Below the pieces are notes generated by a model, which was not told where the DNA came from, made no database searches, and saw only the letters and a list, made by a program, of their open reading frames with translations. The position numbers and the translations under genes are program-made. Shown here one piece after another: positions 58,972 through 60,917 of a DNA stretch of 64,000 nucleotides (position 1 is its first letter; every line of letters begins with the position of its first letter). Source of the DNA: Macrostomum lignano (lineage: Eukaryota); NCBI GenBank assembly GCA_002269645.1, contig NIVC01000013.1, forward strand, positions 310,001 through 374,000, read 5' to 3'.

Positions 58972-60917
58972 TCAAAAATCAGCAAATCTCTTAAAGTCGG
59001 CGAACCGCTTCTTGAAGTCGGCGAATCTCTTAAAGTCGGCGAATCTCTTCTTGAAGTCGGCGAATCTCTTAAAGTCGGCGAATCTCTTTTTAAAATCTGC
59101 GAAACGCTTTGTTGAAACCGCACTCTCCAGTTCTTGCTCGGCGGCCGACACAGCGCTGTTTGAGTCTGAAAGGGTTTTTGCTGTACTTTGAATCCTCTCA
59201 TGTCTGTCTGTCCGTCTGTCTGTCTGTCTGTCTGTCTTAGTGTCTGTCTGTCTGTCTGTCTGTCTGTCTGTCTGTCTGTCTGTCTTAGTGTCTTAGTGTC
59301 TGTCTGTCTGTCTGTCTGTCTGTCTGTCTGTCTTAGTGTCTGTCTGTCTGTCTGTCTTAGTGTCTGTCTGTCTGTCTGTCTTAGTGTCTGTCTGTCTGTC
59401 TGTCTTAGTGTCTGTCTGTCTGTCTGTCTGTCTGTCTGTCTGTCTGTCTGTCTGTCTGTCTGTCTGTCTGTCTGTCTGTCTGTCTGTCTGTCTGTCTTAG
59501 TGTCTGTCTGTCTGTCTGTCTTAGTGTCTGTCTGTCTGTCTGTCTTAGTGTCTGTCTGTCTGTCTGTCTGTCTGTCTGTCTGTCTGTCTGTCTGTCTGTC
59601 TGTCTGTCTGTCTGTCTGTCTGTCTGTCTGTCTGTCTGTCTTAGTGTCTGTCTGTCTGTCTGTCTTAGTGTCTGTCTGTCTGTCTGTCTGTCTGTCTGTC
59701 TGTCTGTCTGTCTGTCTGTCTGTCTGTCTGTCTGTCTGTCTGTCTGTCTGTCTGTCTTAGTGTCTGTCTGTCTGTCTGTCTGTCTGTCTGTCTGTCTGTC
59801 TGTCTGTCTGTCTGTCTGGCTGTCTGTCTGTCTGTCTGTCTGTCTGTCTGTCTGTCTGTCTGTCTGTCTGTCTGTCTGTCTGTCTGCCTGCCTGCCTGCC
59901 TGTCTGTGTCTGCCTGCCTGCCTGCCTGTCTGTCTGTCCGTCTGTCTGTCTGTCTGTCTTCTGTCTGCCTGTCTGTCTTTCTATCTGTCTGTCTGTCTAT
60001 CTGTCTGTCTGTCTGTCTGTCTGTCTGTCTGTCTGTCTGTCTGTCTGTCTGTCTGTCTGTCTGTCTGTCTGTCTGTCTGTCTGTCTGTCTGTCTGTCTGT
60101 CTTTGTGTCTAAAAGACAATTTTAACGAAGTTTTCTTTGCTTTCTACTCAGCCTCAAATTTTTCAGCGGAGCGTTAAACGAAATTAGAGGAGGCTGAGCC
60201 GCAGATGACTTGATCACCAACGCTATCTCAAGCTTGTGCAATCTTTAATTTAATAAAACTTTGCCTTCATGCTGATTTGACTAACAAGCAAAAGGTAGAC
60301 AAAAATTCGGTTTATAACTGGAATTCCAGACGTCTCATCAACTACCATTGTATTGTCTCCTCTCTCTCTACTACCTCATTTTCAAACTCTACTCAACTCT
60401 ACTCATGTCTCTACTCTCTACTCGACTCTCTACTCTCTACTCTAGTCTCTACTCTCTACTCTATACTCTAGTCTCTACTCTCTACTTTACTCCCTAATCT
60501 AGTCTCTACTCTCTACTCTACTCTTTACTCTACTCTCTACTCTCTACTCTACTCTCTAATCTACTCTCTACTCTACTCTCTACTCTACTCTCTACTCTCT
60601 ACCCTACTCTCTAATCTACTCTCTACTCTACTCTCTACTGTCTACTCTACTCTCTACTCTCTACTCTACTCTCTACTCTCTACTCTACTCTCTCCTCTCT
60701 ACTCAACTCTCTACTCTACTCTCTACTCTCTACTCTACTCTCTACTCTCTACTGGAGTATCTACTCTCTACTCTCTGTTCCCACACTCGACTCTGATATC
60801 TGCTTCTCAGTCTCCCTCCCGAGCGGTCTCACCGTGAGCCGTGGCCGCAGCCACCAGGACGACCAGCATAGCCATCAGACCCAGGTAGCGAGTGCAGACA
60901 GCAGACGAGTGTCCCAT
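58972..60917 (-). CDS. Neuropeptide precursor, 97 aa, 7 x FADF. Exons 60917-60833 and 59180-58972.
   Basis: Exon 1 [28 protein letters not shown] is a signal peptide ending G|GTGAGA (phase 1). Exon 2 after TACAG reads [69 protein letters not shown]-stop. 294 nt in frame; synonymous codon variation between peptide copies. Confidence 0.82.
59202..60101. repeat. (TGTC)n microsatellite with TTAG interruptions, in the neuropeptide intron
   Basis: Direct reading. Confidence 0.98.
60395..60775. repeat. (CTCTA/CTACTCT)n low-complexity repeat, in the neuropeptide intron
   Basis: Direct reading. Confidence 0.93.

Follow-up and report, generated by a model that had tools for sequence, protein, structure and literature searches.

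The AxxxDF family comprises non-amidated, multi-copy peptides, among them nemertean ASWLDF and brachiopod AKFNDF, AKFVDF, and AKFFDF (Thiel et al. 2021, PMC8557429), and peptides of the AxxxDF precursor of Lineus longissimus have been confirmed by mass spectrometry (PMC8557429). These peptides set a precedent in spiralians for multi-copy, non-amidated peptides that end in -DF and are flanked by KR or KKR sites. To our knowledge, no flatworm member of this family has been described. A second group, npp-37 in the numbering of Koziol et al. 2016, is a family of flatworm neuropeptide precursors that includes TcrWFU_00951 of Taenia crassiceps and EmuJ_000665800 of E. multilocularis. Spiralian AxxxDF, and possibly npp-37, are the known families closest to the subject of this study, a gene of the flatworm Macrostomum lignano that encodes seven copies of the tetrapeptide Phe-Ala-Asp-Phe (FADF). 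The gene lies in a stretch of 64,000 nucleotides (nt) of contig NIVC01000013.1 (assembly Mlig_3_7, GCA_002269645.1) that begins at contig position 310,001, hereafter the window, to which all coordinates refer.

The FADF precursor gene consists of two exons on the minus strand in the region 58972-60944. Its components, in the direction of transcription, are the following:

60833..60944, minus strand: coding part of exon 1, with the signal peptide; its last base, G, is the first of a split codon (phase-1 intron)
59181..60832, minus strand: intron of 1652 nt, with a GT donor at 60832-60831 (G/GTGAGA) and an AG acceptor at 59182-59181 (gtacAG)
58975..59180, minus strand: coding part of exon 2, with the spacer followed by the peptide array
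58975..59109, minus strand: peptide array of seven identical FADF tetrapeptides with 18+21 nt (39-nt) periodicity
58972..58974, minus strand: stop codon TGA, directly after the last FADF
58863..58868, minus strand: AATAAA, located 104 nt past the stop codon, a candidate polyadenylation signal

Exon 1 contains two in-frame start codons. The upstream ATG (60944-60942) is the first start codon of the open reading frame (ORF); it adds MLRTTQLST before the second Met and yields a product of 106 amino acids (aa). When translation begins at the second ATG (60917-60915) and the acceptor preceding 59180 is used, the joined coding sequence measures 294 nt, remains in frame, and specifies a 97-aa product. 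Exon 2 then starts with CAAAAACC after gtacAG, at the junction 59181/59180. An alternative acceptor is located 15 nt downstream (cccttTCAG/ACTCA; intron end 59166, exon start 59165) and is also in frame. Its use replaces AKTLSD with D (...TAH-D-SNS...) and shortens the product by five residues. Two start codons combined with two acceptors thus give four possible products of 106, 101, 97, and 92 aa. The choice of start codon or acceptor leaves both the signal peptide and the FADF array unaltered.

Tandem repeats make up most of the intron. A GAGTAGA-type repeat covers approximately 60400-60790, and a (GACA)n microsatellite of about 200 units (59201-60110) alone accounts for 48% of the intron length. 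The original prediction, made from the DNA letters without database searches, had described a two-exon minus-strand gene interrupted by a microsatellite. The join across the canonical GT...AG intron is in frame and reproduces the predicted 97-aa protein exactly. The gene occupies a 2.5-kb non-satellite island between a 3.3-kb satellite with a 23-nt period (55456-58726) and a 1.6-kb satellite with a 22-nt period (61244-62819). An annotated gene elsewhere in the window (25430-28995, plus strand), which encodes approximately 711 aa with two adenylate-kinase domains, displays the same microsatellite-intron habit: one of its introns is a (TCTA)n microsatellite (27211-27697).

In the spliced translation, the FADF units follow linkers that alternate in the order KR, KKR, KR, KKR, KR, KKR, and KR, and the last FADF abuts the stop codon, as had been predicted. 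None of the seven units is followed by Gly, in agreement with the earlier proposal that the peptides carry no amidation signal. The acidic spacer foreseen upstream of the array is present, but its acidity is only mild, with four acidic residues and one basic residue among 23. Codon usage differs from unit to unit: TTC and TTT encode Phe, GCC, GCA, and GCT encode Ala, GAC and GAT encode Asp, and AGA, CGT, and CGG encode Arg. All of these variants had been listed in the original prediction, and AAG and AAA for Lys can be added to them. A scan of the window for the array pattern returned it three times against zero expected, and the array is unique in the window. At the DNA level, units 2-6 constitute a 39-nt tandem repeat (Tandem Repeats Finder: 3.1 copies, 92% matches), and codon diversity is found mostly in units 1, 6, and 7. 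A Pfam scan assigned the precursor to no family, and the absence of a Pfam domain fits the expectation for a prohormone. We regard both the gene model and its multi-copy FADF layout as solid.

The product of exon 1 shows the n/h/c anatomy of a signal peptide, with an Arg in the n-region, a hydrophobic core of 14-15 residues, and small residues at positions -3 and -1 (ATA, AHA). The Kyte-Doolittle maximum reaches 3.0 over residues 12-24. In a word-indexed protein search, the only database relative of the full 97-aa product was P0001 (UniProt A0A1I8F9E3), an 88-aa M. lignano entry named 'Secreted protein', which matches the exon 1 part only. Identity amounts to 85% over 40 aa, with two one-codon indels, and the matching stretch includes the residues upstream of the second ATG. 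P0001 itself begins at the ATG equivalent to 60944. The two sequences diverge after ...TAHG, where P0001 continues with an unrelated low-complexity tail of 48 aa, and this 3' half has no coding match anywhere in the window. Judged from its sequence, P0001 appears to share the phase-1 donor of the FADF gene. The match provides independent support for exon 1 and its donor site. P0001 probably represents a paralogous first exon joined to something else, that is, a mis-joined model of a paralogous FADF-type gene from an older assembly. As such, it illustrates how automated annotation can lose exon 2.

In prohormone biosynthesis, cleavage after KR is carried out by a PC2-type convertase, the trailing K or R is then taken off by a carboxypeptidase E-type enzyme, and a peptide without a C-terminal Gly is not amidated. 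Applied to the FADF precursor, this scheme would begin with removal of the signal peptide, probably after ATA or AHA. A PC2-type convertase would then cut after each KR in the regulated secretory pathway, and a carboxypeptidase E-type enzyme would trim the C-terminal K and R residues. The predicted output is seven free-acid copies of Phe-Ala-Asp-Phe plus one spacer peptide of approximately 23 aa. Once released, FADF would serve as an intercellular signal, most likely as a neuropeptide acting on a G protein-coupled receptor (GPCR). Transcription and splicing of the gene, cleavage of its product, a neuronal site of expression, and a receptor are inferred. The gene very probably encodes a secreted precursor that is cut into seven copies of FADF, a new peptide of an ordinary kind, the product of a multi-copy neuropeptide-like prohormone. 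Multi-copy peptides confined to one lineage are commonly discovered in surveys of invertebrate neuropeptides. The promoter of the M. lignano PC2 homologue drives expression throughout the nervous system (PMC12435804), so a convertase of the proposed type is present in the animal.

The general plan of the gene is that of other multi-copy prohormones, such as those of the FMRFamide type and the planarian npp/spp precursors. Common features are a signal peptide, identical short peptides between dibasic sites, a final copy at the C-terminal end, and a small gene with two exons. In contrast to FADF, most flatworm and FMRFamide-type peptides are amidated via a C-terminal Gly. The motifs DFKR and DFKKR do not occur in the text of the planarian prohormone supplements (Collins et al. 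2010, PMC2953531).

Overall, we consider it probable that the gene encodes a secreted, multi-copy, neuropeptide-like prohormone of 92-106 aa that is processed at dibasic sites and yields non-amidated peptides. Several points weigh against this interpretation. The call of a signal peptide rests on heuristic criteria rather than on SignalP. The pyrimidine tract is weak at acceptor 59180 and better at acceptor 59165, although both acceptors are in frame. The inner five units of the array are a very young 39-nt duplication. No FADF-repeat orthologue was found in other organisms in the protein and metagenome searches. Finally, dibasic processing is also found in non-neuronal secretory cells, and this bears directly on the neuronal role.

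This last point leads to a different assignment, in which FADF is a pheromone, an allohormone, or a defensive peptide that is secreted and dibasically cut in a non-neuronal exocrine or reproductive gland. Possible sources include the prostate or seminal fluid, as well as adhesive, rhabdite, or pharyngeal glands. The architecture of the precursor reveals only a secretory product processed at dibasic sites, and the sequence does not fix the tissue. Moreover, planarian prohormone genes are reportedly active in tissues beyond the nervous system as well, and their expression differs in sexual animals (PMC2953531). However, the combination of a tiny precursor, seven identical, very short peptides flanked by KR or KKR, and the lack of any further domain is typical of neuropeptides processed by PC2. 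Furthermore, its closest analogues (AxxxDF, achatin, and the npp genes) are catalogued as neuropeptide precursors. A gland product thus appears unlikely, and a neuropeptide-like prohormone is the assignment that we prefer.

A second alternative denies the array any function and treats it either as a 39-nt minisatellite open by chance downstream of an unrelated hydrophobic ORF or as a decaying pseudogene copy. Satellites do dominate the window, arrays of this kind tend to be open in all frames, and the inner units are near-identical DNA copies. The variation between units nonetheless argues for selection on the protein. Relative to the column consensus, the units carry 12 differences, all of them synonymous in the FADF frame, and at least 11 of these were counted by hand as independent events. 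A random substitution in the array is synonymous with a probability of 0.16-0.25, so the chance of 11 synonymous events out of 11 is 2e-9 to 2e-7. In the other two same-strand frames, zero of seven differences are synonymous. Six other satellites of the window with a period that is a multiple of 3, including coding repeats of an annotated neighbouring gene, served as controls, and none was all-synonymous in any frame. Purifying selection on the FADF/KR frame is thereby shown, which bears out the earlier claim that the array is more than a simple DNA repeat. Because the inner units are recent DNA duplicates, the signal comes mostly from units 1, 6, and 7 and from the linkers.

The opposite strand also carries an open frame over the array:

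58910-59191, plus strand: antisense ORF of 93 aa with KSANLL repeats, overlying the FADF array

Variation in this antisense frame (KSANLL...) is mostly synonymous over three units, with six synonymous differences and one non-synonymous difference, a result that lends some support to a chance origin of the pattern. Over the whole array, however, the antisense frame shows amino-acid changes between units, and only the FADF frame varies by synonymous changes throughout. The antisense ORF was rejected as a coding sequence on account of these changes, its TTG start, and its lack of a hydrophobic N-terminal stretch. The mostly synonymous antisense variation mirrors that of the FADF frame, with which it has wobble positions in common, and does not indicate a second gene.

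Other features of the locus are also at odds with a non-functional array. The sub-units measure 18 and 21 nt, each divisible by 3; the stop codon comes immediately behind the final FADF; and the GT donor and AG acceptor match in phase. The paralogue P0001 has retained exon 1, with indels that keep the frame. Taken together, these observations make a non-functional array improbable. In an annotated 709-aa gene of the window (30481-34167, minus strand), nearly all of whose coding sequence is made up of minisatellites with 21-nt and 24-nt periods (encoding EEQTEPT and DEQQEQAT units), variation is overwhelmingly non-synonymous, with synonymous to non-synonymous counts of 0:27 and 4:33, the opposite of what is seen in the FADF array.

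The prohormone gene was looked for in existing protein collections. An exact look-up in a collection of 15 billion proteins retrieved none of the four possible products (106, 101, 97, and 92 aa). As a positive control, the same look-up found a neighbouring LRR protein of Mlig_3_7 together with its paralogues g2 and g3. Exhaustive phmmer comparison with 1.84 billion cluster representatives returned no FADF precursor and only five weak, repeat-driven matches. The contig look-up returned no records for the separate exon ORFs or for nearby repeat ORFs. In the word-indexed protein search, the 97-aa product matched nothing beyond P0001; given a 218-aa piece of the neighbouring LRR protein, this method missed collection members of at least 90% identity (P0009 and P0010), so its negatives are weak. 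Among metagenome contigs, a degenerate DNA scan for the array motif gave no matches. A scan for DF-KR-FxDF-K gave 66 loci, of which 65 were single matches, taken as chance without inspection, and the sole double match was a microsatellite in an actin intron. In the searchable full-text literature, queries for FADF as a named peptide and for 'KRFADF' returned nothing relevant. The gene is thus absent from the protein sets queried, including the annotation of this assembly, a statement that means not annotated in those sets rather than never seen. The exact look-up and the phmmer search, neither of which found the precursor, agree with the earlier claim that the gene is missing from protein sets, and the literature search with the remark that FADF is not a recognised named peptide.

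The LRR gene used as a control (36036-38789, minus strand) encodes a single-exon, 917-aa LRR/LRRCT transmembrane protein and matches an annotated gene of contig NIVC01000013.1 exactly. Its paralogues BOX15_Mlig015930g2 and g3 share at least 90% identity with it and lie on other contigs, which is consistent with the partly triplicated genome of M. lignano. The FADF gene probably also has paralogues approximately 20 kb from the BOX15_Mlig015930g2 and g3 copies.

For comparison with described families, the FADF precursor was scored against a panel of 32 neuropeptide precursors. The relevant bit scores were the following:

P0005, a metatranscriptome precursor of [S/D]WADF peptides: 31.2 bits
AxxxDF precursors with peptides ending in -DF (Lineus, two Lingula isoforms, and Baseodiscus): 25-31 bits
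Taenia npp-37: 22.3 bits
Best achatin: 21.2 bits
AxxxDF precursor of Cephalothrix (ASWIDT): 13.9 bits

With four of its five precursors, AxxxDF is the best-scoring named family in the panel, and the alignments consist of repeats only. The environmental sequences P0005 and P0007 (JGI/IMG contigs of 1253 and 1154 nt) encode a 302-aa protein with a signal peptide and approximately 13 KR-flanked copies of MGPQ[S/D]WA[D/N]F-x. From its sequence, this protein looks like an undescribed multi-copy neuropeptide precursor with the S-W-x-D-F core of nemertean ASWLDF.

The likeness between FADF and AxxxDF precursors extends over several levels. Both have a signal peptide, an acidic spacer, and a short, non-amidated peptide with C-terminal -D-F that is repeated many times. 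The AxxxDF copies are flanked by KR and occasionally by KKR, for example in ...ASWLDFKKRASWLDFKR..., and the -D-F free acid directly precedes the cleavage site in each case (FADF-K(K)R, ASWLDF-K(K)R, and AKFNDF-KR). An aromatic residue occupies position -4, as seen when W-L-D-F and F-N-D-F are placed beside F-A-D-F. In addition, the copies in the Lingula precursor follow one another directly in tandem, as the FADF copies do. Differences lie in peptide length and in the surrounding sequence. AxxxDF peptides are hexapeptides with an N-terminal Ala, whereas FADF has four residues, and the positions of A-[S/K] are taken by K/R-R. Nemertean precursors contain spacers between copies and a conserved C-terminal domain (...IKVIREMLLKD...), and this domain is absent from the FADF precursor. 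The similarity rests on a motif of three to four residues and could reflect convergence.

In the case of npp-37, the Taenia precursor combines a signal peptide, a spacer of approximately 30 aa, and KR-WTDF-KKR, and thus a dibasic-flanked, non-amidated tetrapeptide of the form aromatic-x-D-F in another flatworm. Its alignment with the FADF precursor is colinear, with a score of 22 bits and a single-pair E value of 2e-4. WTDF, however, is present as a single copy only. In the trimmed Taenia sequence, it is followed by SIPRRTLLPHFE, and this stretch may be the part of npp-37 that is really conserved. FADF could be the macrostomid member of an ancient spiralian family to which AxxxDF and the WTDF of npp-37 also belong and whose peptides are free acids of the form [W/F]-x-D-F. 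We give this view a low probability, regard homology only as a lead, and make no claim of membership. In this view, the peptide might also carry a D-residue at position 2.

The original prediction had called the precursor achatin-like. The achatins described in the literature are GFGN in xenacoelomorphs, a hemichordate, amphioxus, and priapulids, and GFGD, GYGE, GFGE, GFVD, and GISD in nemerteans; GFAD and GFFD are further achatins of the form G-(D)Phe-x-D/N. Throughout the sequences compared, the N-terminal residue is Gly and the C-terminal residue is D, E, or N, in the pattern G-[F/Y/I]-x-[D/E/N]. FADF resembles them as a non-amidated tetrapeptide encoded in multiple copies between KR sites of a small precursor, and it has the letters F-A-D in common with the Achatina peptide GFAD. 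Nevertheless, FADF has no N-terminal Gly and starts with Phe, and the residue before this Phe is the Arg of the cleavage site, so that F-A-D is shifted by one residue across that site. Position 2, an aromatic or bulky residue and the site of D-isomerisation in achatins, is Ala in FADF, and the C-terminus is Phe, where achatins have an acidic residue or Asn. In the panel, achatin precursors scored at most 21 bits, below the 25-31 bits of the four AxxxDF precursors with -DF peptides. That FADF is a divergent achatin, orthologous to the G-(D)Phe-x-Asp peptides, with a D-residue at position 2 and an achatin-type GPCR as its receptor, is therefore highly improbable: judged by its sequence, it departs from achatins in three of four sequence features, has only the generic layout in common with them, and is not an achatin, and the label does not hold. 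L-to-D isomerisation of Ala2 in FADF is speculation.

The surroundings of the gene are rich in repeats. The window has a G+C content of 42%, is dominated by micro- and minisatellites, and contains a single assembly gap (an N run at 9545-9855). From 42487 to beyond 48789 on the plus strand lies a YAP/Yorkie homologue, for which the assembly annotates a 574-aa WW-domain gene whose introns contain several minisatellites. The ORF of its first exon includes a TEAD-binding motif (Pfam TEADIR3, E = 5e-4, below cutoff). Satellites with a 23-nt period belong to several families, measure 0.7-3.3 kb each, and take up much of the window; the first 20 kb consist mostly of two families in alternation. Their positions are:

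266-1107: satellite with a 23-nt period
2810-5102: satellite with a 23-nt period
6211-8686: satellite with a 23-nt period
10365-11899: satellite with a 23-nt period
13627-15142: satellite with a 23-nt period
16874-19605: satellite with a 23-nt period
39921-41337: satellite with a 23-nt period
50157-50883: satellite with a 23-nt period
55456-58726: satellite with a 23-nt period, adjacent to the FADF gene

M. lignano is a transgenic, regenerating flatworm model for which we found no published neuropeptide catalogue. A precursor with seven copies of a non-amidated tetrapeptide that was missed by annotation is a concrete and easily tested addition to this model. The case also illustrates how microsatellite introns hide small prohormone genes in the repeat-rich genome of M. 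lignano. Should the link of FADF to AxxxDF and npp-37 prove false, FADF would be one more lineage-specific peptide. If the link is true, it would provide a handle for deorphanising a spiralian peptide-receptor pair. The [W/F]xDF family would then rank among the few links that connect the otherwise idiosyncratic neuropeptide repertoire of flatworms with the repertoire of other Spiralia, and would suggest the existence of an orphan receptor family.

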